A stretch of 64,000 nucleotides of DNA from sequence record OR142618.1. One strand, written 5' to 3'. How positions within the stretch are numbered: the stretch's first letter is position 1; every line of letters begins with the position of its first letter. Positions 4,203 through 49,498 of the stretch are shown piece after piece. The translations under genes were made by a program, and so were the position numbers. Under the pieces are notes generated by a model that had not been told where the DNA came from, did no database searches, and was given only the letters and a program-made list of their open reading frames with translations.

Positions 4203-4394
4203 GTGTTATTCATGCAAACCAAAGCAACCGAGTTGGCAGTAGGCGATGTTGTTTTCTACAATGGCATGAAAATGACTATCCAGAAAATTTCTAAAGGTCG
4301 GTGTGCAATAGATATTACACTAGTAAATACTTTGGCTAAACTCACATCTTATGTGACAGTCGACTACGACGAAGAATTTGAAGAAGTATTATAA
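4203..4394 (+). CDS. Small hypothetical protein, SH3/KOW-like beta pattern (start 4203 or 4212)
   Basis: TTGCAT-N17-TAGTAT promoter, AGGAG RBS; ELAVGDVVFY pattern. Confidence 0.7.
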   Translation: MLFMQTKATELAVGDVVFYNGMKMTIQKISKGRCAIDITLVNTLAKLTSYVTVDYDEEFEEVL

Positions 4395-4411
4395 TGCAGA
4401 AATTATAGTCA

Positions 4412-4440
4412 TAAGAAAAGGGGCATTGCCCCTTTTCTTA
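4412..4440. terminator. Bidirectional terminator between convergent genes
   Basis: TAAGAAAAGGGGC-ATT-GCCCCTTTTCTTA perfect inverted repeat. Confidence 0.9.
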
Positions 4441-4677
4441 TAGTCCCAACAAATGCTTGCCACTTTTGACTTGCATCATACGTACTTTCTTTTTGCGCAT
4501 TTGCGTTCTTACGTTCAGGCTGTTGGGACCTTTGAAGCTATACAGTATTTCAGTAGTCCCGTCTTCATAGTTGCGTACCACATTTGCAACAATTTGACTG
4601 CCTTCCTGGAACGCTTCGATAAACACGCAGTAATTGAAATTTTCCTTGTTAGCGTTATGTGCGCGTAGTTGCATCAT
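4438..4677 (-). CDS. Hypothetical protein (79 aa)
   Basis: AGGAG RBS and TTGCAT..TATACT promoter on the minus strand. Confidence 0.8.
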   Translation of the reverse strand: MMQLRAHNANKENFNYCVFIEAFQEGSQIVANVVRNYEDGTTEILYSFKGPNSLNVRTQMRKKKVRMMQVKSGKHLLGL

Positions 4678-5030
4678 TTTCTGTTACTCCTGCGTTGTTT
4701 TGCTTTGTTATGTGTAGTATACGCTATGTGTGTACTAATGCAAGAATTTTCTTCCATTTTCTTTCAAATAAAATGTTATTAGCATCTATTCTGTTATAAC
4801 ATTTTCTATGACTTCGTGTTTTGCAAATAAGAATTATTCGCATTTGCATTCCTACCTATCTGCCTAAATTTTAGGCAGCCTGGGTGATTGTCTCCCCCGC
4901 CCTATTACTGGTCTCTGTATAAAGATAATAGCATATTTGCATCTGCATGCAAGCATTTTTTGTAGAATTTTCCTCTTGACATTCCTTGCTGTAGGCTACA
5001 TTATGCACACACAAAGCAGGAGATACCATT

Positions 5031-5411
5031 ATGGCACTCATAGCATTAGTCGCAACTGCATATGACAAAGAAGGCGATAAGTTCGACTATGTTCGATATC
5101 TTAAAGCTCATATCAATTTTGTGTCTGCTCAAGATCAACTGAAAGAATGGATCAAAAACAAAATTGATGCAAGTATAGCAGAAGTTAAAATCGGATTACG
5201 TGCAGAAATCGAAGTATTGGCCTATTTGGGAAACTATATAAGCCATAGTCAACGGATTATTAGTCCCGCCGGGATCATCATGTACATTGTTCTTGATGAG
5301 AAGTATGTTAACGAACTTCACGGTCAAATTTCTAATGCAATTGATTGTGAAGAAAAGAAACATGTAATAAAGAAAGAAGAAAACGTCACTTATATTGATT
5401 TTAAAAAATAA
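5031..5411 (+). CDS. Hypothetical protein (126 aa)
   Basis: AGGAG RBS, TTGACA upstream. Confidence 0.8.
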   Translation: MALIALVATAYDKEGDKFDYVRYLKAHINFVSAQDQLKEWIKNKIDASIAEVKIGLRAEIEVLAYLGNYISHSQRIISPAGIIMYIVLDEKYVNELHGQISNAIDCEEKKHVIKKEENVTYIDFKK

Positions 5412-5447
5412 CTTGCGTTAGCTGTAATGTATATGTATTATGTACTC

Positions 5448-5604
5448 AAGTTTGCAGCAAGACGTATTAATTTGTTTTGCTGTTAGTTGTAACTCCTGCT
5501 ACCAAGTATGTGTTGAGCTAATGCTCCTGACTTGGTTCTTGGTACACTGGTTTGGGTGTACCGTTCTTGAGCTGCAAAGGGCTTGCCCGGAGCAGCTTTT
5601 TTTT
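5448..5604 (+). ncRNA. Candidate structured small RNA or attenuator leader
   Basis: TTGCGT-N17-TATTAT (5413-5441); stems 5455-63/5474-82, 5501-07/5530-36, 5515-18/5523-26, 5541-47/5556-62; terminator 5570-75/5592-97 + T tract. Confidence 0.65.
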
Positions 5605-5684
5605 GACCAATATTATTCATTTGACAAAAAATAATAATTAAAAATATAATAGCTTAGTGTATAACTTCCCGTATTAGGCTAATT

Positions 5685-6056
5685 ATGAAATTTGTTATTG
5701 CTGCTATTGCATTGTCTTTGTCCACACTAGTTTCTGCAGAATCTATTTCTGAAGTTAAGATAACTAAAGAAACATGTCTTACACTTCTAGAATTATCTAA
5801 GATTCATGTTGATATGGTAGTAAATGAACACATGAATGCAATACAAATTGCATCTCAAATGGATATTGTATCTAATTCATATAAGAATAATAATAGTAAA
5901 TGGCTTGCATTCTTGCAAGCTCAAGCAAATATTTCAAAATTAATTGATAATGTATATGAGTTTTCATCTACTGAAGAAAGAAAGATTATTCCTCTAGCCA
6001 TATTTAACGGTTGTATGGAAAGAGTTGGTAATACTTTAGAAATATATAAGAAATAA
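5685..6056 (+). CDS. Hypothetical protein with predicted Sec signal peptide
   Basis: MKFVIAAIALSLSTLVSA-ES N-terminus; own TTGACA-N18-TATAAT promoter. Confidence 0.75.
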   Translation: MKFVIAAIALSLSTLVSAESISEVKITKETCLTLLELSKIHVDMVVNEHMNAIQIASQMDIVSNSYKNNNSKWLAFLQAQANISKLIDNVYEFSSTEERKIIPLAIFNGCMERVGNTLEIYKK

Positions 6057-6698: not shown

Positions 6699-7136
6699 AT
6701 GACCAAAGCAACCGTTACCGTCGAGCAATCCGCAATCAAACTGGTCCGCCGCAACCTGGAAGGGCACCGGCAGGCCCTGCTGCTGAACGGCGTCGAAGTA
6801 GGCAGCAGCGAAGCGTTCTACAAGACCAAAACCCAGCGCACCTGGTCGGCGAAGATCGACGCCAACATCAACGGCAAGGACATCGTCCTCGAACAGAAAG
6901 GCGTGTTCAGTGCGATCCGGATCGCCCGGGCGATGGAACAAGCAATCCTGTTCATCCTGACCGACGGCAAAGAAGGCGCCGAGATGCCGGCCAGCACGCT
7001 GAGCAAGGAAGAGCAAGCCCACAACCTGGTCAAGGCAGTAGTTCAGGTTGCCGGCCACGCAGTCCAGTCCGGCGACGCTGCCCCGGCGAAGAAAGGCAGC
7101 TCGAAGAAGCGCAAAGAAGCCCAGCCGGAAGCATAA
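6699..7136 (+). CDS. Hypothetical early protein; paralog of 521..991
   Basis: AGGAG RBS, GC-rich codons, shared motifs, basic C-terminal tail. Confidence 0.9.
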   Translation: MTKATVTVEQSAIKLVRRNLEGHRQALLLNGVEVGSSEAFYKTKTQRTWSAKIDANINGKDIVLEQKGVFSAIRIARAMEQAILFILTDGKEGAEMPASTLSKEEQAHNLVKAVVQVAGHAVQSGDAAPAKKGSSKKRKEAQPEA

Positions 7137-8124: not shown

Positions 8125-8354
8125 CATTATTAAGTCAAATGCAAATGCAAATACAAATTATTCTTATTTGCACAGATCAGACCATCCATTCCAATAACAT
8201 TACTAACTTGGATGAAATGGCTTACTACAATGAACTTTGAATACTAAAAAGTACCTAAGAAGTAATTCCAGTTGTATCTAAAACACTATGTGTTATTATA
8301 CATATAGTGTTTTTATTTCTTATAACTATATTCAATAATAATGGTAAAACATAT

Positions 8355-8678
8355 ATGATTGAAGTAATTAAATGCATTATATGTAATGAATCACCCCGTC
8401 CTGGTGCATTTGCAGCATTTATTACTCAAATGCGTCAAGTAGTAAAACCTCATGCAACTATAACTAGTTGGAATATTCTGCCCGGCATTAATGATGATCC
8501 AACTAGTTATATTCATGCATTCAGTATAAAATCAAAAACAGCATACAATATTAATCAAGCAGTTACCTTATTACTAATGTCATTATATAATGCTAGTGAA
8601 TATAAGACTAGCTACATACCTACTTCGTTTAAAGACTATGAATCTACAATAAAACATTTATCTAAGATCAAACAATAA
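8355..8678 (+). CDS. Hypothetical protein
   Basis: Likely ATG at 8355 (track start 8307); CxxC near the N-terminus. Confidence 0.65.
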   Translation: MIEVIKCIICNESPRPGAFAAFITQMRQVVKPHATITSWNILPGINDDPTSYIHAFSIKSKTAYNINQAVTLLLMSLYNASEYKTSYIPTSFKDYESTIKHLSKIKQ

Positions 8679-9353: not shown

Positions 9354-9503
9354 ATGTGTAACATTCAATGCATGAACAGCAAAGCCGGCGAGTCCTACGC
9401 ATGGGTTTGGAGCGATAGCGATAGCGATATCTGCTACGAAGTTATCTTCCGGCATGGCCAAGTCCTCACCCAGGTTTGGCTCGGATATGATATTGTAGCC
9501 TAA
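9354..9503 (+). CDS. Small hypothetical protein (49 aa, not in ORF track)
   Basis: TTGACG-N17-CATAAT (9286-9314), GGAGG RBS, hairpin 9512-9536 after stop. Confidence 0.7.
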   Translation: MCNIQCMNSKAGESYAWVWSDSDSDICYEVIFRHGQVLTQVWLGYDIVA

Positions 9504-9552
9504 CACCAACTAAAGCCCCGTCCCAGGCGGGGCTTTACCGAAGGAAAAGATC

Positions 9553-9762
9553 ATGATCGAACAACTGAAAGACATGCTCGTAGCGCAACGCATGCGCATG
9601 AACCAACTCGAAAAACTGCGCTACACCGGACGCGTCGCTAGCGAGTTGCATGCCCACGCCAGGGAATTGTGTGAAGCATTGGAACTGGCAATTGCAAATG
9701 CCCAGTGCCTGGAAATGCGCAAGTGCGAAGAGGGCACCCTGCACGCCCTCTTCGCACAATAA
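9553..9762 (+). CDS. Hypothetical helical protein (69 aa)
   Basis: AAGGA RBS. Confidence 0.75.
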   Translation: MIEQLKDMLVAQRMRMNQLEKLRYTGRVASELHAHARELCEALELAIANAQCLEMRKCEEGTLHALFAQ

Positions 9763-9795
9763 CCCACCGCGCACAACCCGACAAGGAAACTAACC

Positions 9796-10287
9796 ATGAG
9801 CACTACCATCCCCGATTCGATTCATCCGAGTGATCTTCCTGAAATCGGGCTGCCATTAGCCGACGGAACCTTCTTTGCCCGCCAATGGCTCAATGGCAAG
9901 GAATACGCCTACGTCGATCTCGGCAAAAGCGCCGAGTTCACTGGAGAATGGGGCAAGTATGGCCATGACGTGGTCGGCGCCGGCAGCTACCGAGACGGAG
10001 CTTCGAACACGGTCGCTATGGCAGAAGCTGGCAGTCCGATTGCCAAGCAAGCCATGGAGATCGGAGAAGGCGTATTTATTCCCTCTGTTCTGGAACTGGC
10101 TCTTCTGTTCTCCGCCAAGCAAGCAGGCGAGTTGTCTGGTTTCGCAGATCGCTGGTATTGGTCGAGTTCGCAGGACTCCGCTAACGCCGCCTTCAACATG
10201 GACTTCGGCGACGGCTACACAAGCGGACACGTCAAGTACGTCGACTTCCGTGTCCGCCCCGTCCGCAAGATTCTCATCCTTCAGTAA
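9796..10287 (+). CDS. DUF1566/Lcl C-terminal (C-type-lectin-fold) domain protein
   Basis: GASNT..PSVLEL..WYWSSSQ..AFNMDFGDG..K..FRVRPVR motif set; GC-rich codons; AAGGA RBS. Confidence 0.8.
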   Translation: MSTTIPDSIHPSDLPEIGLPLADGTFFARQWLNGKEYAYVDLGKSAEFTGEWGKYGHDVVGAGSYRDGASNTVAMAEAGSPIAKQAMEIGEGVFIPSVLELALLFSAKQAGELSGFADRWYWSSSQDSANAAFNMDFGDGYTSGHVKYVDFRVRPVRKILILQ

Positions 10288-16935: not shown

Positions 16936-18154
16936 ATATTATTAAAATTGTTTTTGTATAAGTATACGTATTATTGTCGTATGTAGTTACTCGCCATGAT
17001 ATGTCTTGCGTCTGTCCCACTGTGCCGGAATTTGACGAAAAAGTCCATGTTCTGTTAACTACAACAGGATCATTTGGTCTTACATAATTAACAGAGCCCT
17101 TTGAATTTGTTCTAGTTGTATTAGATCCTACAGGCAGAGGGTATGCAACTCCGTCAAATACTATTTCTTCAGATACGATTGCTTGATAGCCGAATGTAAA
17201 TATTGCAGATCCGGTTACACTAGCACCCTGCTGTACTTGGTTAGGACCGGAAATGTTCATAGTAGGAACTATTGCTGCACTATTTGTTAAATTATATAAC
17301 AGTGCATAAGTAGGCGATATAACAGGATATATTGCACTAGAAATATGTTCTATTACTGTAAATTGCAAATTTCCTTGAACTATAGTTTGTGTGTCAAATT
17401 CCGTAAATATTACATAAAATGATATAACAGATGGACTGTTTAACTTTGCTTGAACAGACATCTGGACGTTGTCTATTTTAAGTATAAAAACTGTTTGATA
17501 TGTATTATTTAATTCATAGAACGTTTTAGTACATGGTTTGCTGTTAGTTGGTACGCTTGGTGCAGATATTCCGAAAAATACAACAGAATTTATATTTTCT
17601 AAAAGCTCCTTCATCTTTGTAGAAATAGTAGTGCTCGGCGAGGTCATCTGAGGCGTTATTCTTATTGCGCCGCCTGTATTGAAAAATTGTCTTGCATGAT
17701 TATTATCATTAAATGTGACAGTAAACTCTGAATATACAGATTGATCCCACGGAGCACTCGTCGGTCTACTAGATGTTAGTTTAGTAGTATAAGTCGGATT
17801 TGCTAATTTACCTCTATTAGCTTCTAATAAAGATAATGCATCGCCTAATGGTAACAATGTACCGGGCGGTTGCATTACATCATAGTTATATGCAGCAATT
17901 GTATTACTTGAAGATACAATTGCTGGCCAGGCTGCGCCTAGTAACGATGTGCCTTGATGTAATGCAATAGTTTGCATAGTAGAAAACAGTGTATTCCAGT
18001 TAGATGCACTGATTATATTTCCTATAGCAACTTGTTGTACAGGAACAGTCTGTCCGTATCCGTAGCTACCTGTTCCTGTACCTAAAATATTTTGTATTTT
18101 AGAAGAAAATAGATTATAATCAGCAGCCTGTATTACCTGATTTCTTGCGTACAT
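16934..18154 (-). CDS. Virion structural protein (tail/baseplate associated)
   Basis: IQAADYN..GTGTGSYGYGQT N-terminus recalled from jumbo-phage structural proteins; in the tail cluster. Confidence 0.7.
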   Translation of the reverse strand: MYARNQVIQAADYNLFSSKIQNILGTGTGSYGYGQTVPVQQVAIGNIISASNWNTLFSTMQTIALHQGTSLLGAAWPAIVSSSNTIAAYNYDVMQPPGTLLPLGDALSLLEANRGKLANPTYTTKLTSSRPTSAPWDQSVYSEFTVTFNDNNHARQFFNTGGAIRITPQMTSPSTTISTKMKELLENINSVVFFGISAPSVPTNSKPCTKTFYELNNTYQTVFILKIDNVQMSVQAKLNSPSVISFYVIFTEFDTQTIVQGNLQFTVIEHISSAIYPVISPTYALLYNLTNSAAIVPTMNISGPNQVQQGASVTGSAIFTFGYQAIVSEEIVFDGVAYPLPVGSNTTRTNSKGSVNYVRPNDPVVVNRTWTFSSNSGTVGQTQDISWRVTTYDNNTYTYTKTILII

Positions 18155-21947: not shown

Positions 21948-22079
21948 ATTAACCCCTTTTATTTAATAATTCTTTATTTGTTTTCAGATCTACAATTTTA
22001 ACGTGATCGAGGGCGTGACCGAGCACGTCCTCGTCTGGTTTTTTATTGTTACTGTTATCTTTCTTATTATCCATATCGA

Positions 22080-22087
22080 TATTTATC
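22080..22087 (-). promoter_or_regulatory. Putative late promoter GATAAATA
   Basis: T4 TATAAATA-like; recurs before structural genes. Confidence 0.6.
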
Positions 22088-22098
22088 TGTGTTTTAAA

Positions 22099-25000
22099 CT
22101 ACGGAGTTAATCCACTTCCAGGTCTGTTTTGTAAAAATATAGCCCAGGGAGTTGTACTTAGAGCAAGACCACCGTTATTATTTTCCCATATGTACTTACC
22201 TGTATCTTCTTGTTCTTGTTTATACGAACCGTCAAATACTCTAGTATATAAAGGCACAGTTGTATCTCCATTTGTTCCGGTATATACAGATGTCCCTAAT
22301 GATCCCCTAGTCAATCCGTGTAATTTATTACCGCGTTTATATAAGAATTCTATACGTTCGGTTCCTATCCAAACTACACCGGGTTTACTATTAGACGGAT
22401 CTACTATTGCAGATGCATCTACTAACTCTATAGATTTATCTGTAAGTTTTAATGGTTTAGCTAATCTAGTGCTATAATAATCAGAAATCCTAACATAGTG
22501 TGTTTCGCCCATTTCATCTAGGTGTACCCTGAAGCTTAGTGGTTTGGCAGGATATTTGATTACAACATTATCACCTTGCATTGTAACTGGATTTATGAAA
22601 TTGTGTTGTTCATTGAATACAGCTACCCACGAATTATTAACAATATCGGTTACTTTTTGAATGTTTGTTTCAGTCCAATCGATTCGTATAATATCGCCTG
22701 CGTTAAGAGTACCCTTATATACTACTAATAACTTAGCATTATCACCTGTTATATTTGTGAATTCTATAGTGTAGTCTTTGTCTTTAGTTTTACTAATTCC
22801 ATTTATATAAACTGTCTCTCCTACAAAATTACGTATACTAGTATCTACAGTGAAAAGTTTTGTATTTGTATACAATATTTCTTTACTCTTACGAGTATAT
22901 AAATTATTAGATACACTGATCATTCTTTTGTTAGCAGCAACAAACATGTCTAAAGTCTGCAACTTATATTCAGATGTAGTAACAGAAGTTATGTTATATT
23001 TGTTCATTACATACGAAACATAATCATCTAACTTCATTATAGAATAAGATTGATATTTAACTGTAATTACAGTTCCTGCACTCGGCGCAATTTCAAAATT
23101 AATAACAAGTTCAGGAGTAATTCCACTATTATCTACAACTACTGTATAGCCATACATTGCAACTCCGCTTGAATAAACACCCTGGACTCTGTTGGGGAGA
23201 ATATTCATACCTGTATGTATCATAGTATCTACACCATTTGCAGTAATATCTACAAACTTGTATGTAAGTTGTCCCGATGCCTGTGCGACTACTTCGTCAG
23301 GATTAGCAATAGTTGGCATATCTATAGGTAGTAGGTACACACTATCTGCATTTTCTGGAGAATCTATGCTTGGATCCCAAGCAAATGTATCCCATGTGTT
23401 TATATCTTTATTTTGTTTTGTATTTCTTAAATCTACAGTTATGTATCCTTGAGTATTATCCCTTACTACCGAATTAGTATCAAACCTATAATCGTTAGCT
23501 ACAGTAGTTTGTGAAGTATAATTATCTTTATAGACTACTGATATAATATCACCTGTACTGAAACTAGTAGGATATGCAATGACTACGGTATTAATGCCGT
23601 TGTTATCTATATTAAACTTCAATTTGTCTTCAGTATTAGGATCTCCGTTTATAACTAACCCTATTATATCCTGTAACACTATTTTTTCAGTTAATACTAT
23701 TTTAACAAACGGGTTCGAAGTATCTGTATTAGTAACAACATACTGAACTTCTGTAGTCTTCGCATTAGAATCTACAATAATAACCATGTTCTCTGTAGGA
23801 GATACTAATGCTTGTTCTTCTGGGATGCCTTCTCTTACGTCAGTATCTTCAAAATATGCACCATCTATTATAGGCTTACTAGTGTCACTGTTAAATGTAT
23901 TAGTAACAGGATTAAAAGTAAACACTATTTCGTCACCTTCTACTGCGCCAGGAACTTCTATAGATGTAAAATTAGAACCTTTTGTAGCAGTGTATTGTGT
24001 AGAAGATCCATTTAGTGTTACGCTAGTTATATCTACTACATATCGTATGACAAATGTTGTTTTTCCTTCCGATATGACTGTTGCACTTGTTTCGGTATAA
24101 TTAGGAGTAATAACATACGTAGCAGTAGAGGCATCCCATGCGTATTCGTCCCATTTTGTACTATCCCACGGTCTGCTAAATATGTACTCAAAATCTTTAG
24201 CATCTATGACCTTGCCTTCATAGTCACACCCGTATTCGTCGCCGAATCGTTCGTTAAATTGGAATAAAACATCTCTCTCGCCGGCTGAACTTTCGTATAG
24301 ACGTTCAGTAAACGAACTGTATGGATATGAACCGTTTATGGGTGCGGCACTTAAAATATCCCGTTGCAAGTCAGTTTGATATAATATATATCTTCCAGCA
24401 GCGCCAGAATATTGTAAGTATTCAGTCCATAATTGACGATTACCTTCTTGTATTGTGCCCGGTATACCCCAACGTAATTGACCCCACTTAGGTATACCCC
24501 AGCCGCCTGCGATTTTACCAGCTGGATCTATTGCTAAATCAAATATAGGTTTAAGCACTTTACCGGGTTGTCTAGCATTATATTCTAACCTCATTTCCTC
24601 TAACGGAGTTTGGGTGAATTCTGTACCAGAATATAATTTTATTTTAGATCCTATTTTAATAAGAGTATTTGATTTAAATGTTACTTGTAGATAACCATTC
24701 TCGTTTATTTCTACATCATATTGCTCTTTAGTAATAGTTTTTCCATCTACCTTAATTTTCCAAACAGATTTTATATCGGTGTAGTTTACTATTATTACAT
24801 CACCTGCATCAGGAGTAGAAGGAAGTATTATAAATGTTGCATTTAATATTGTAGTGAATGTGTAACCTTCTATTTCTTGCCCATTTATTGTTACAGATGT
24901 TATTCTAGAAATATCTTTATTAGCACCTAATTGATATTGAGAAATTCCATCTAATGCTATAAATTCATCATTAGGAGTATTTGCTATAAGAACTACTTGG

Positions 25001-31000: not shown

Positions 31001-33672
31001 TACCCTAGTGCGTTATCTGGTAAAGCTTCTTTAGAATATGTGTATGTTTGAATAACATCAGTTGCAGAGAGTGATCTCAATATTTTTATAGTTTTAGTAG
31101 GTTTCCCGTCGTTATCCAGGACTATAGTAAATTCTACATTCTGTGCAAGGGTAGATTTATTGTATTCTACTCTTATGTCAAATATACCCGGTTCCAATTC
31201 TTCGGGTGTTACGCTTAGTTCGTATTCTTTTTGCGAAGAATCCGATACTACAAATCTATCTATTACTCTTTGTTTAGAATTTCCGTCAAATGGCACCCAG
31301 GTATGCTCATATGTGGGATTAGAGCCAGATATTGTATAATTCCATTGTTTAAAATAATAATAACCTTTTATTGGTTCGAATTCATTTCCGTTAAAGTATT
31401 GGAATACATCCATGTGAAGATCGTGTCTAAACACAATATCGGATATTTGACCTAAGTTTTTTACTTCAATAGGAAATCCTAGTATTTCATCGTCGTATGC
31501 ACTTTCTTCATTTATTTTATACGAAAAAATCTTAGATCCAGCAAATGTAGATTGCGGGAAACTATCTAACGAAATTGCATTGTTATTAGAGTCTAAATCG
31601 GTATAATATAAATTAAATAAAGGAGCTTGGTTAGCATTTGTTTTTCTATTATAAGTCCTTTCCCATTGTACTCCAGTATAATAGAACATGTCTCCTGCAA
31701 ATGTATCTCCTTCAGTTACTAATACTACATCTCCTTTAGCAACTTTTGTGTATTTGTTAGGAACAGGGATTATACTGTTTACTACAGTATTGTCTGGCTG
31801 TTCTACTTTAACTATTTTCCATATATAGTCTGTTGCATTTAGTGTAAGAGTTTCGTTATCTCTTACTATTAATTTAACAATACTATCGTCGGGCACTATA
31901 TTTTTAAATTCTACTAATAGTGCATTATCTTGTTCTATTGTAAAACTAACAAAATCATCTGCAGGATTATATAAGTAGTCATACGATACTGGATCATTGT
32001 TTGCATCTCTTGTATATGCATCTATTTGAATACCTATTATATGATTACCTATATTTTGTTGAGTAAAATTAAAAGTAAAATCATTATTAAATAAAAATGT
32101 TCTTCTGGCGCCTGGTCCTTCTATTGCTTCGGCAGCAGGCTTCTTATACATGTTTACTTTATTGTTTACATTTATTTCTACTTGGTCACCAGGCAATAAC
32201 CCATCTATGTTATCATTTATGATTACATCAAATGCTAAATTAGTAGGTAAGGTAGTTCCTGTAATGGTTACAATGCTATTATTCTTACCAACAGGTGTAT
32301 TTAATGTTTCTACATTAAATGTAAACGAAGTTCTCGGCTGTCTTATAGATGTTCCTCTGTTAACTACATCTATAGTCTTAATAGTTCCTACGCTAGATGG
32401 TGTATAAAATTTATATTCAACGCCATTTGTTATGTTTTCAAAACTAACATTGTTTATATCATACGAAATAGGATTCCATTGCAATCCTTTTGTATCTGCA
32501 ATGAAATTCATTTGGTTTAATTCATCTTCGTACGAATACCATTCGGGATTGTAAAACATTTTGTTACCACGTTTTACAATTACAAATATATCATCTGTAT
32601 CAGTAAATGGTTTTCGTAATATTATATTGTATGGCGCTGCATCTGCAATAAATGTATCTACAATTGGATAAGTTATTGTGCTATTAGATAAGAAAATTAA
32701 CTTATCTTGATCTTCTAATAGTTTTCCATCAATAGTGTATGATGCAGAATTTGATATACTAGAAATATTATCAGACTCGGCTACTAGATTAACTTCACCT
32801 AAGTAATTATTTCCAGATTTAAATAACTCTATATCTCTATCAAACTCTATAATAGGTCTTCTTGCCTTAACTGCGTTGTTATACGTAGATGTATTGGTTG
32901 CAGAGGCAGAAGTTGCCATTACAGATTTATGATACCATTTGTTAGTGCGGGACCATGCGTTGCCATCTCTGCAGCCGCGTTCTATAGTGATATAATCTAC
33001 AGAGCCAACAGTATCTACTAAGTGAGATTCATCTTTTACTAAAATAATACCTTTTCCGACACCTTCTACAGTTAATGGTCTATTAAATGAAGACGAGTTA
33101 GTATATTGTATTCTGAGTCCGTTAGAAAGCTGAATAGTATTACCGTTTTCTAATGTTATACTGGCGTTCTTTTTTCCTATTATATTGTTTATTATCCATT
33201 CGTCTGCGTTTATACCACTTTCGTTTTCTACTGTTAACATAATAACAGGCAGCCGATCTTCTATCCAATAATAATTTTGGAAATTTATAAATTTATCTAA
33301 ATCTATCGGCGGACCGAAAGAATAATATCCGCCAGAAAATAAAGTGTCATTATTCTTTGTATTAGCACCATAATAATTTAACCTGTTTAACAAGTCTTGG
33401 TAAAACATTATATTTGTTTGATCTAACGTAGTAGAATCAATACTATACGAGGTTGCTTCTAACTGATACCAAGTCCGTTCTTTAGTAGGTTCTGCTAAGT
33501 AATAATCATTTATAGGATCATGTCTACCGGGAACTCTTCTACCTATGTAGGCAGTTATATCCTCTACATTCTTTTTAGAAAATAGTTGCTCAAATGTAGC
33601 TAAAAAGAATCTTTTTTGGGTATCTGTTCTAAATATACCAGGTAACTTGTTAAACGTTTTTAATGTTGCCAT
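22099..33672 (-). CDS. Giant virion protein (3857 aa), probable baseplate wedge/fibre scaffold
   Basis: Uninterrupted 11.6-kb ORF next to the gp6-like wedge gene; beta-rich; contains YNYGDVVRYNGVYYQC, a carbohydrate-binding-like motif. Confidence 0.85.
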   Translation of the reverse strand: MATLKTFNKLPGIFRTDTQKRFFLATFEQLFSKKNVEDITAYIGRRVPGRHDPINDYYLAEPTKERTWYQLEATSYSIDSTTLDQTNIMFYQDLLNRLNYYGANTKNNDTLFSGGYYSFGPPIDLDKFINFQNYYWIEDRLPVIMLTVENESGINADEWIINNIIGKKNASITLENGNTIQLSNGLRIQYTNSSSFNRPLTVEGVGKGIILVKDESHLVDTVGSVDYITIERGCRDGNAWSRTNKWYHKSVMATSASATNTSTYNNAVKARRPIIEFDRDIELFKSGNNYLGEVNLVAESDNISSISNSASYTIDGKLLEDQDKLIFLSNSTITYPIVDTFIADAAPYNIILRKPFTDTDDIFVIVKRGNKMFYNPEWYSYEDELNQMNFIADTKGLQWNPISYDINNVSFENITNGVEYKFYTPSSVGTIKTIDVVNRGTSIRQPRTSFTFNVETLNTPVGKNNSIVTITGTTLPTNLAFDVIINDNIDGLLPGDQVEINVNNKVNMYKKPAAEAIEGPGARRTFLFNNDFTFNFTQQNIGNHIIGIQIDAYTRDANNDPVSYDYLYNPADDFVSFTIEQDNALLVEFKNIVPDDSIVKLIVRDNETLTLNATDYIWKIVKVEQPDNTVVNSIIPVPNKYTKVAKGDVVLVTEGDTFAGDMFYYTGVQWERTYNRKTNANQAPLFNLYYTDLDSNNNAISLDSFPQSTFAGSKIFSYKINEESAYDDEILGFPIEVKNLGQISDIVFRHDLHMDVFQYFNGNEFEPIKGYYYFKQWNYTISGSNPTYEHTWVPFDGNSKQRVIDRFVVSDSSQKEYELSVTPEELEPGIFDIRVEYNKSTLAQNVEFTIVLDNDGKPTKTIKILRSLSATDVIQTYTYSKEALPDNALGYYQIPQQLENNPNNLEVNEYSSNELTNHFVSIMTNQIGFKGDPYSSNNNYRDTAEDKSLGTFILQNRSPLLKTMLVSSSEELNINSAIRFARDEYTRYKDKFIKYAKELIAAPLNQNTNPVNIDALFTYVINRVTSTFEYNGAFTQSYMAAWGDVYDEYNFSSASVGNTLLVPTNNILGKMDSSVLVFRRSGTSVDYNTLTIDKDYTLSYSNNNLVVKLSSTPSNTSYIVRIYNNILSAKIPATPSKIGCYPVYQPKIIVDTSYVTPTEVILGHDGSKIPTYGDIRDDLLLEFETRIYNNIADKFRLDYNLLLKLDDVKPTKFYENGYTLQQYNEIVKPYFLKWCLKNSLNYKLYSGFNSLNWKTWNYRPVSNDSIGSWRGLYKYYYNTLTPNKTPWEMLGFVEKPTWWDEEYNGDYTSQNTDMWTDIENGIIRRGNRAGTHEKYKRTGLVPNLIPSDTSGDLKTPEELGIVPQLSNQEIETLQDEWIFGDNSPVEEAWYTNSEWPFVQLELLYLMKPADFGERYWNPLDDTRAPINAKQYISSSTYTRISNSNTYAHGEVVNGNIVLNSGYQQYVFDRLSFMGKQDITYNFGSKIRSLDVCLAHRLAGYTNVDTLNVYADSISGGSTNSSMLLPNENIHVRVYTGKPITEYVFSGVAIRVNEYGKFEVRGYDVLNPVFKVVPRSTLVSGTTINVGGTTSNFTIYDTNVQYNYGDVVRYNGVYYQCVVIAAQGKFNQDNWMRLKSLPATGGITVNYINEGDYSEFYEIEYGSELDTPQDVFDFLIGYGQYLELNGWKFNEIDQTTGEVLNWVTSAKGFLFWATTQWAPNNTLFVAPGASKITLEVNEGYPEKVERISNGVYSILDQNGYAISPNDTIIDRDRRTISVSHESDQIGIYLFRVSTSDTEHAILFDNKTIFNDTIYDPLLYSRQKRLQLRGIRTNDWYGKFEADGYLIQDDNLLQNFENLTDSIWHYYDTENTLDNPIIEQTARHLIGFQDREYLNNLRITGDQQYLFYKGMISQKGTKQSVDKLLRSEFIKSNENIQIYEEFAFKLADFGATNSNAQLEVLIDGDLVKSDPQIVELSYPVSYGTGKVSEVRVLSSEMIYTTTPIIVFATPEEANAGLDPNVDAYLQGNQLNSPNNSIVEEIRATGQVVLKNGRIDSVTITEPGYGYIKPPKIAIIYNQTVITIDKLISIIKNKIDEDSPYDMIITIDSDDNERWLSKPNGRMPVIVGNEIKYNDRLVPTTKQLDGNIPTAGYVNTKDVTHQILYPKNIFTLWERKDVSKPSLTSYIWVGNASSVGIDWGVFVIYSGLTPATNALYPYCVINNMVYSYTVDSDGVIDAIFDKEGNQVTNVPIQNPLFFKNVRFKNNATVNVTSGKVWIDSINSDNDWAVAVVSGSTITNIRSRQNLVDSKLFENAYFYDKDTKQTIDFLPVYDPVKGLIPGTADRNIHYKSEIDPTTYSVSANSANIDDELAFTDSEVGRLWWDTSTCRYLQYEQPGKLDGSETKEQILEYRRDNWGKLFPGSVINVYEWVSSPFTPDLYNGTGTPKSLTDYVVRYDTNSAGQATPIYYYWVKGKQEIPNNIKSRNMTSTSVENLITNPKSQGYKWFSFIGNNSFVFSNVSKTINGKTPVFQVNYRYTKNINEKHTEWKLLREGDEVSVIPTYLWNRLVDSLVGYNINGDIVPDPTLSEFSKLGIKVRPRQSMIDNRMAARKVFVQNANSLLSTISIKDFNPAWADGLASSVLWRYVNWYADGFNQFNTTPVKQVSTVGELTGLVGKLKDGDIVKLVRPEEFTLYQYSNQNFTLIGRQNSAIQLLPAIYTVSRSYTNDNALRELIFALYNNVFKDANLVMRNLVFFALINYVLSEQQNLDWVFKTTYIKVNQEGESLTQQESVTTDPIQSFISYIKEIKPYTTKIRDLGVKYNVPMDIANGTAYDYDSLYDWPDDHEGEQAPFRPIEVPRLFDINSLYDRVQCGYITKPNYIDLGDQTFIGTGGQVVLIANTPNDEFIALDGISQYQLGANKDISRITSVTINGQEIEGYTFTTILNATFIILPSTPDAGDVIIVNYTDIKSVWKIKVDGKTITKEQYDVEINENGYLQVTFKSNTLIKIGSKIKLYSGTEFTQTPLEEMRLEYNARQPGKVLKPIFDLAIDPAGKIAGGWGIPKWGQLRWGIPGTIQEGNRQLWTEYLQYSGAAGRYILYQTDLQRDILSAAPINGSYPYSSFTERLYESSAGERDVLFQFNERFGDEYGCDYEGKVIDAKDFEYIFSRPWDSTKWDEYAWDASTATYVITPNYTETSATVISEGKTTFVIRYVVDITSVTLNGSSTQYTATKGSNFTSIEVPGAVEGDEIVFTFNPVTNTFNSDTSKPIIDGAYFEDTDVREGIPEEQALVSPTENMVIIVDSNAKTTEVQYVVTNTDTSNPFVKIVLTEKIVLQDIIGLVINGDPNTEDKLKFNIDNNGINTVVIAYPTSFSTGDIISVVYKDNYTSQTTVANDYRFDTNSVVRDNTQGYITVDLRNTKQNKDINTWDTFAWDPSIDSPENADSVYLLPIDMPTIANPDEVVAQASGQLTYKFVDITANGVDTMIHTGMNILPNRVQGVYSSGVAMYGYTVVVDNSGITPELVINFEIAPSAGTVITVKYQSYSIMKLDDYVSYVMNKYNITSVTTSEYKLQTLDMFVAANKRMISVSNNLYTRKSKEILYTNTKLFTVDTSIRNFVGETVYINGISKTKDKDYTIEFTNITGDNAKLLVVYKGTLNAGDIIRIDWTETNIQKVTDIVNNSWVAVFNEQHNFINPVTMQGDNVVIKYPAKPLSFRVHLDEMGETHYVRISDYYSTRLAKPLKLTDKSIELVDASAIVDPSNSKPGVVWIGTERIEFLYKRGNKLHGLTRGSLGTSVYTGTNGDTTVPLYTRVFDGSYKQEQEDTGKYIWENNNGGLALSTTPWAIFLQNRPGSGLTP

Positions 33673-48303: not shown

Positions 48304-49270
48304 CATAATAAAACTAAAGGACGTATGTAACAAAACAGACGTTCTCCTAAGTGTTTTAAAGTTTTTGCTTAGGAAGACCCAGTTGTATGTTTAAAGGGTG
48401 AACGGTAACGGGCATTCTTGTTTAAGACTAGTTCTTATGAAGACATTGGCAACTAACATAGCAGCTTTGTTCCATCATTGGATATTGGTAGTAGAAACTA
48501 TCCCCATCGTGCCTTTACTGTAGTACCGTTAGAGACGGAGATGACGCAGGAAAAAAGGTTATTTAAATTATGATTTTGGGTGCTGCAGAACACTTTCGTA
48601 AACAAAAGGAATATAGTTTACGTATACACAACGGGAACGGGAAAAAGCTTTTTAAGCAAAAACGAGTCCCTGGTAATTGGTGTTTAACGGGAGTGACGTC
48701 CCAAATGTTATTCATCGATTAACACTGTAAGAAGGTTGTAAGGGTTATTGTGTTCGAAGTGGTTTACACAACTGTTCTTCCTACATTTATGTACAGAAGT
48801 GTAAACGAAAGGATGTTGCTCTGGTAGAAAAAGATCAACGTACTTTATGACACTATCCTTGTGACATATGTACTTGTACCAACAACAGCCGCAGGTTACG
48901 GATATGGTATTACAAACTGTACTGCGGTTCCGGGAGTTGAAAGTGGATGTTAGCTTAGGTGGCTGTTTGCTTAATTATAATGTTTAATTTAGGCAATATA
49001 AGCGTCGGGTGAGGCTTTCGTAGGTTGCGTGTTTATGCTACGGTGTAAATGGGCTAGACTACTGGCGCATACATGAGTATTGTAGGATTGGCGCTTTAAT
49101 AAAGAAATTTGTTAAAGTTTGAGTTTAGCTCCCCGCTCATTAGCAATAAACGTTGCTAGTCGATAGTATACCCACGCCTAAATAATGCCGTCATTGTTTA
49201 GTTTTTTTAAAAAATATAATTGTCAATTATATGTCGTACGCATCTACCCCGAAAAGGGGTAGATGTTTAT
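48304..49270 (+). ncRNA. Candidate large (~900-nt) highly structured non-coding RNA
   Basis: Perfect promoter, no ORF of 60 aa or more, 5'/3' end pairing (48310-26 with 49185-205), many nested stems with G-U pairs on the plus strand, terminator-like hairpin. Confidence 0.7.
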
Positions 49271-49498
49271 GACTTTCGTTTACACTCATGTCATAATCAG
49301 TACACGCCATTTTAGGCCATTCTACATCAATACACTGCTTCTAGCAGTGTATTGGACATACAAAATGATCTTAAATTATATCAAATTTGTTTAATTACTT
49401 TAATTTTGTTACTTTAGTAATTTGTATTTTGTTTATATGAGTTGTAGTTTACGAAAACGAATATAAACAAAATACATATGTGAACTGTAGTTCACATA
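49214..49498. repeat. Cluster of perfect inverted repeats
   Basis: 49214-32 (9 bp), 49328-54 (12 bp), 49424-75 (15 bp), 49477-98 (10 bp). Confidence 0.85.
49241..49270 (+). terminator. Terminator-like hairpin
   Basis: CATCTACCCC-GAAAA-GGGGTAGATG then TTTAT (short T tract). Confidence 0.65.

Follow-up and report, generated by a model that had tools for sequence, protein, structure and literature searches.

Short RNAs derived from the 3′UTRs of mRNAs are known from enterobacteria, DapZ, MicL, CpxQ and SroC being examples. A 3′UTR may also act on the message that carries it: in icaR of Staphylococcus aureus, a UCCCCUG motif in the 3′UTR pairs with the mRNA's own Shine-Dalgarno region and blocks translation initiation (PMC3868564). 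In Bacillus subtilis, expression is repressed in vivo by anti-Shine-Dalgarno-like 8-mers that lie hundreds of nucleotides past the ribosome-binding site and pair with it; genes are as a rule depleted of such long-range sequences, which in that system lower both translation and stability (Gill et al. 2025, PMC12697547). Among the giant phages of Pseudomonas, ONT-cappable-seq has mapped sRNAs, and the eleven of 201phi2-1 are intergenic or 5′UTR-derived (PMC11512511). Four ncRNAs have been annotated in phage PA5oct (ncRNA001-004, at 8263-8498, 21951-22401, 103065-103368 and 246116-246734; PMC7318152), a count given as five in the 2018 preprint and as four in the 2020 paper.

The DNA analysed here, a window of 64,000 nucleotides, matches base for base the end of the Pseudomonas phage Callisto record (OR142618.1; window position = record position − 222,854). 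Callisto is a jumbo phage of 287 kb that belongs to Wroclawvirus, the genus with PA5oct as its type member. Between the homologues of PA5oct EST35_0095 and EST35_0096 (gp95 and gp96 here) we find a structured RNA that is conserved across the genus, transcribed and unannotated as RNA. In PA5oct the element occupies 32,667-32,859, inside the 39-kb terminal repeat, where gp34-gp105 are highly transcribed at 5 min after infection and where early transcription, the work of the host RNA polymerase, runs almost exclusively on the Watson strand (PMC7318152). Searches of Pfam, PHROGs, PDB sequences and the ESM Atlas suggested no function for gp95, gp96 or a 64-aa ORF that overlaps the element. The 34% GC phage genome also contains islands of 55-70% GC, found in the window at about 600-1000, 2100-2500, 6700-7100 and 9400-10100, which are probably acquired genes.

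The likeness to icaR lies in a C/U-rich motif (UCCCCUG in icaR, CUCCUGCU in the element) that is complementary to the Shine-Dalgarno region of the same message and is carried, in the gp95 mRNA by prediction, on a long 3′UTR. The element differs in that it belongs to an early gene of a phage with a Gram-negative host, in that its motif lies in a linker between hairpins, and in that its duplex, of 8+3 bp and predicted from sequence only, is probably too short for RNase III. As in the B. subtilis study, a pyrimidine-rich 8-mer lies far downstream of the site it matches, at a distance of ~470 nt in the gp95 mRNA; whereas the 8-mers of that study were synthetic substitutions in a Bacillus, that of the element is natural, conserved and scaffolded, which suggests that it is used and not avoided. 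With the 3′UTR-derived sRNAs of enterobacteria the element shares, by prediction, a short RNA that uses the terminator of the upstream gene, an accessible seed, and a U-rich spacer followed by a hairpin and a U-tail. The sRNAs of 201phi2-1 are set apart by their intergenic or 5′UTR origin, whereas the element is in a 3′UTR and is without a sequence relative outside Wroclawvirus. The ncRNAs of PA5oct are ORF-free transcribed regions of the same genus, and ncRNA001 and ncRNA002 also fall in the early terminal-repeat region, but all four occupy loci other than 32667-32859 and have no sequence similarity to the element; identity with any of them was rejected on these grounds.

Folding of the 165 nt from 5440 to 5604 gives a minimum free energy (MFE) of −57.0 kcal/mol, compared with −42.8 ± 3.6 kcal/mol for dinucleotide shuffles (z −4.0), and none of 200 shuffles folds as well. 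The helices of P2, P3, P4 and the terminator (Table 1) have pair probabilities of ~1, and the hairpins and terminator of the preliminary description are all found at the positions it gave. The exception in detail is the inner stem of the terminator, described there as GGGC/GCCC; such a stem would give a 2-nt loop, and we therefore assign it as GGG/CCC closed by a CUUG loop. The terminator hairpin (5569-5598; −15.5 kcal/mol) has a z of −1.5 by itself and is followed by a U8 tract (U9 in phage Ettore). A pairing of CTCAAG with CTTGAG, proposed earlier, is real: it appears in the centroid fold as an optional closing stem, and the fold constrained to contain it (−55.3 kcal/mol) lies 1.7 kcal/mol above the MFE. 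Within the linker between P2 and P3, positions 5490-5497 are unpaired with a probability of 0.8-0.94.

Once corrected for GC, the element ranks 8th among ~1600 windows of 160 nt for folding. Its GC content is 44%, compared with 28-34% in the adjacent genes. The + strand folds to −57.0 kcal/mol and the − strand to −46.1 kcal/mol, an advantage of 11 kcal/mol that stems from G-U pairs, as expected of an RNA. Other + strand stretches that fold far beyond their GC expectation are 49120-49400, 1882-2036, 17780-18020 and 55-520 (residual z −4.2, −3.7, −3.5 and −3.3). Of these, 1882-2036 precedes the gene at 2037 as its leader; within it, a CUCCUG pairs beside the GCAGGAG ribosome-binding site of this gene. 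The stretch 55-520, in a 467-nt intergenic gap, includes a long GC-rich hairpin.

Table 1. Features of the gp95-gp96 region of Callisto, in window coordinates.
Feature	Position	Strand	Description
gp95 promoter, TTGACA-N17-CATTAT	4976-5004	+	10/12 match
gp95 Shine-Dalgarno region	5015-5026	+	AGCAGGAG (5015-5022), A, then UAC; complementary to 5489-5500
gp95 (homologue of PA5oct EST35_0095)	5031-5411	+	126 aa, no known family
Candidate internal promoter, TTGCGT-N17-TATTAT	5413-5441	+	8/12 match, −35 3/6; below scan threshold
Optional closing stem, CUCAAG/CUUGAG	5445-5450/5566-5571	+	centroid fold
Hairpin P2	5454-5464/5473-5483	+	11 bp, 8-nt loop, −14.1 kcal/mol, z −5.0
Linker	5484-5500	+	sole long single-stranded segment; CUCCUGCU at 5493-5500
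Hairpin P3	5501-5507/5530-5536	+	outer 7 bp, inner 4 bp GAGC/GCUC, −13.4 kcal/mol, z −4.2
Second CUCCUG	5524-5529	+	in P3, half buried
Hairpin P4	5541-5548/5555-5562	+	8 bp, 6-nt loop, −12.6 kcal/mol, z −3.9; then U-rich GUUCUU
Intrinsic terminator	5569-5604, stem 5569-5575/5592-5598	+	7 bp, 3x3 internal loop, 3 bp GGG/CCC, CUUG loop
gp96 promoter, TTGACA-N18-TATAAT	5621-5650	+	perfect sigma-70, 12/12; between terminator and gp96
gp96 (EST35_0096 homologue)	5685-6056	+	signal peptide

The element is present as a single copy in all ten Wroclawvirus genomes of the phage collection. Only six of its 160 nt vary; five of these sites are unpaired, and the sixth (G5464A, in the stem of P2) converts a G-U to an A-U pair, so that all 45 pairs are intact across the ten genomes, with none broken and no compensatory change. 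Covariation, which had been proposed as a check of the fold, is absent among the relatives, all of them at least 96% identical. The variability of the element (6/160, 3.7%) is close to that of the gp95 coding sequence (11/312, 3.5%), and the adjacent non-coding sequence 5605-5684 (9/80, 11%) is three times more variable than the element. The linker sequence is invariant in the ten genomes.

A distant blastn search of 50,697 phage records returned no relative outside Wroclawvirus, all matches being to the same genus. At the protein level, no distant relative of gp95 or gp96 was found in IMG/VR, nor of gp95 in JGI metagenomes, and degenerate hairpin patterns had no match in IMG/VR, metagenomes or GTDB genomes. 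The Rfam search suggested at the outset yielded no family that matches the element, with nothing relevant at gathering score for the whole window or at E up to 10 for 5300-5750; a scan for tRNA and tmRNA found none. No paralogue was detected by blastn-short against 107 kb (Callisto 180-230 kb joined to the window) or by BLAST searches of the complete Callisto and PA5oct records.

The hexamers of the gp95 promoter are invariant in the ten genomes, with variation at spacer positions 4986 and 4991, and from their position transcription would start near 5011. Between the gp95 stop codon (5411) and 5569 there is no hairpin with a U tract that could terminate the transcript, and 5404-5450 is unstructured; the element is therefore at least the 3′UTR of the gp95 mRNA, with 193 nt from the stop codon to the end of the U tract. 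The preliminary description had left this placement out of account. The gp95 unit is accordingly predicted, from these signals, to be a monocistronic early mRNA of ~594 nt. RNA-seq evidence comes from the assembled contigs of four runs, which are without read ends, strand or abundance. The contigs of run X3 have zero depth over 4773-4969 and coverage by 5026, and contigs pass unbroken from the gp95 coding sequence into the element (5026-5508; 4333-5789 in run X1). Some contigs bridge 5604, as assembled sequences only. The summed k-mer depth of bin 5364-5560, which holds the element, exceeds that of the preceding gp95 bin (5167-5363) by a factor of ~10-50 in runs X2, X3 and X4; in X1 the profile is flat. 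Contig depth is a poor measure; the excess hints at a short RNA more abundant than the coding region, whether an sRNA or a stable 3′ fragment. The PA5oct contigs also contain a 24-nt insertion at 7079, within ORF 6699-7136.

An internal promoter directly ahead of the fold had been proposed, and the sequence TTGCGT-N17-TATTAT is indeed present, with TTGCAT in place of TTGCGT in the other nine genomes. It is a weak candidate: 738 sites on the + strand of the window score at least 8/12, so that an internal promoter is a possibility. A stricter rule (TTG, an exact 17-nt spacer and at least 5/6 in the −10) leaves 22 sites. Upstream of the gp95 unit, a − strand gene at 4438-4677 has a GCAGGAG ribosome-binding site within 4678-4700; its complement on the + strand, ACUCCUGC, occupies 4686-4693. 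Between this gene and a convergent + strand gene ending at 4394, a terminator-like hairpin of 15 bp at 4410-4442, scored on the − strand, could serve both.

The invariant linker motif is a perfect 8/8 complement of the gp95 Shine-Dalgarno region. Beyond these 8 bp an A-A mismatch is followed by a further 3 bp, formed by 5024-5026 with 5489-5491. The Shine-Dalgarno region is likewise invariant in the ten genomes, while the adjacent positions 5013, 5014 and 5030 vary. In the MFE structure of the predicted 594-nt mRNA the pairing is present in 10/10 genomes, and the Shine-Dalgarno region has an unpaired probability of ~0; for 17 of 128 control genes, the MFE structure of an arbitrary 594-nt fragment likewise pairs the Shine-Dalgarno region with a partner over 300 nt distant, which makes the full-length fold by itself weak evidence. 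Of 2134 windows of the 107 kb, none forms a better duplex with the gp95 start region than the gene's own 3′UTR (−22.9 kcal/mol; fraction 0.0014), and the dinucleotide-shuffle p for this duplex is 0.026. When the downstream regions of 128 genes are compared as partners for gp95, its own ranks second, and the matched-pair z of gp95 (−2.9) is the most extreme of the 128 genes, a value that for one gene in 128 is about the chance expectation genome-wide.

Two CUCCUG motifs occur in the 160 nt (p = 0.00045 in shuffles). When the CUCCU core of the seed is kept and its flanks are shuffled, as many start regions are matched as by the real seed (p 0.13-0.23). Taken together, the anti-Shine-Dalgarno match has modest statistical support (p about 0.002-0.03), from a test selected with the motif already in view. 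The motif also matches four other early genes besides gp95. GCAGGAG occurs 22 times in the genome, once within the element, and five of the other occurrences are ribosome-binding sites clustered within 10 kb around it; for these five start regions, at Callisto 218043, 220241, 224891, 227531 (− strand) and 227885, the predicted energy of binding in trans ranges from −8.0 to −16.3 kcal/mol, compared with −4.4 kcal/mol for gp96. More broadly, early genes favor the Shine-Dalgarno variant CAGGAG, found at 14 of 25 AGGAG-type sites; 12 of the 14 are located in Callisto 210-234 kb (window −12,000 to 11,000). The C two bases ahead of GGAG in CAGGAG is unexplained by pairing with the 3′ end of 16S rRNA.

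The reading that we favor, tentatively and with a probability of about 0.4, is that the element is a 3′UTR, or a 3′UTR-type sRNA, that acts as a scaffolded anti-Shine-Dalgarno repressor and dampens early-gene translation in cis and possibly in trans. No stop signal interrupts transcription from the gp95 promoter ahead of the terminator, and P2-P4 would form the 3′UTR of the gp95 mRNA; a shorter RNA of ~155-160 nt with the same terminator would probably accumulate as well, made from the weak TTGCAT-N17-TATTAT promoter or by processing. The hairpins would keep the 17-nt linker single-stranded, leaving it available to pair with gp95's own Shine-Dalgarno region through the 8 bp, the mismatch and the 3 bp described above. 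Such pairing would join the two ends of the mRNA and, after synthesis of the 3′ end, keep additional ribosomes from loading; as ribosomes load during transcription, pairing in cis could act late only. In the free RNA, the same seed could cover the GCAGGAG-type ribosome-binding sites of the four neighboring early genes, and the net outcome would be an inbuilt means of damping, or shutting off, the translation of early genes. The preliminary description had placed the element among sRNAs that might sponge a protein, mimic an antitoxin or regulate by base-pairing. A non-coding, strongly folded RNA in an early, highly transcribed region fits that account, and of the functions it named, a base-pairing regulator is the most plausible, as a prediction.

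In phage T4, early-translation shut-off is a role of proteins, RegA or RegB. An extension of the proposed repression, and one that we consider unlikely, is that in this phage an RNA and not a protein shuts off early translation: a stable sRNA, once released, would mask with its CUCCUG(CU) seed the CAGGAG/GCAGGAG sites of a dozen early genes, the seed's parent gp95 among them. Other roles were considered for the RNA and rejected. A Rsm or Crc/Hfq sponge is at odds with a single GGA, lost in two strains, and with the lack of A-rich repeats, and the helices are too short for an RNase III site. An RNA anti-CRISPR that mimics CRISPR repeats was also set aside, as the element presumably bears no likeness to those of P. 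aeruginosa.

The main rival to anti-Shine-Dalgarno repression is a purely protective 3′ structure, in which the hairpins and terminator shield the gp95 mRNA from 3′ exonucleases and insulate the next cassette, the Shine-Dalgarno match being coincidental. The location of the element, between stop codon and terminator with no signal in between, is what a passive end would have, the early region is rich in terminator-promoter joints and structured spacers, and both the modest statistics and the post hoc choice of the test leave room for coincidence. However, neighboring cassettes manage with a terminator ~15 nt past the stop codon (that at 4410-4442, after the gene end at 4394, is one), and 158 extra nt, three individually significant hairpins and two CUCCUG motifs exceed the needs of protection; on balance we judge a passive end to be somewhat improbable. 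We are more doubtful of a stand-alone early sRNA gene that has its own promoter and acts on host mRNAs or a host protein rather than on phage ribosome-binding sites. It would account for the TTG-N17-TATTAT sequence and AT-rich upstream tract directly ahead of the fold, one of the 22 such sites in 64 kb, and for the excess k-mer depth of the element bin in three of the four RNA-seq runs. Moreover, P4, the U-rich spacer and the U8 terminator resemble the Hfq-binding 3′ module of enterobacterial sRNAs. Its −35, with just 3/6 matches, is unlike the TTGAC/TATAATA class reported for the phage, however, Rfam offers no match even at E up to 10, and, with one GGA and a lack of A-rich repeats, the RNA does not resemble an Rsm or Crc/Hfq sponge.

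If the element were the functionless relic of a decayed gene or cassette, or if its inverted repeats worked at the DNA level, that would explain why it varies no less than gp95 coding sequence and why its family is confined to one genus. Against these readings, every change avoids breaking a pair, the G-U pairs favor the + strand RNA by 11 kcal/mol, the GC content is above that of the surroundings and the adjacent non-coding sequence is three times more variable; we regard such an origin as improbable. Still less credence can be given to the 64-aa ORF (5440-5634) as a genuine small protein gene. The frame is open in 10/10 genomes, and five sister genomes (Deifobo, Paride, Ettore, Cassandra and PAC2) annotate a CDS, a hypothetical protein, over the element. 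As previously observed, however, the ORF lacks a Shine-Dalgarno sequence and starts, at ATG 5440, within the putative −10 hexamer (5436-5441). It reads through the terminator, comes in lengths of 55, 56 and 64 aa (owing to a frameshift in Ettore and to two independent stop codons), shows three non-synonymous substitutions to one synonymous, and has no Pfam or PHROG match. The CDS calls are probably spurious, an over-annotation of a non-coding RNA. The antiterminator or attenuator switch put forward earlier, which would set read-through into the gene for the secreted protein gp96, is equally hard to credit. The element shares with attenuators and riboswitch antiterminators a terminator and an upstream segment complementary to its 5′ arm: the 8-nt perfect complementarity between 5451-58 and 5571-78 is real, arising in 47 of 5000 shuffles (p about 0.01), and the closing stem, which costs just 1.7 kcal/mol, competes with the lowest 3 bp of the terminator. 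The forced antiterminator helix, however, gives −46.5 instead of −57.0 kcal/mol, a penalty of 10.5 kcal/mol, and requires that P2 melt; P2 forms ~100 nt earlier in transcription than that helix. The element also differs from those systems in lying outside any leader, since it trails a gene and leads none; no aptamer family matches it in Rfam (to E 10), and its sole ORF is without a ribosome-binding site. Attenuation of gp96 in particular is unlikely because the perfect gp96 promoter lies past the terminator.

For PA5oct, which serves as a model of jumbo phages and is a candidate for therapy, the element adds an unannotated structured RNA together with a hypothesis that can be tested by mutation. 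To our knowledge, the regulatory RNAs of lytic phages have barely been charted, and, if anti-Shine-Dalgarno repression by the element is confirmed, we know of no earlier phage case of icaR-type 5′-3′ UTR control. Confirmation would also make the linker motif a natural instance of a long-range anti-Shine-Dalgarno sequence that has been retained and not purged.
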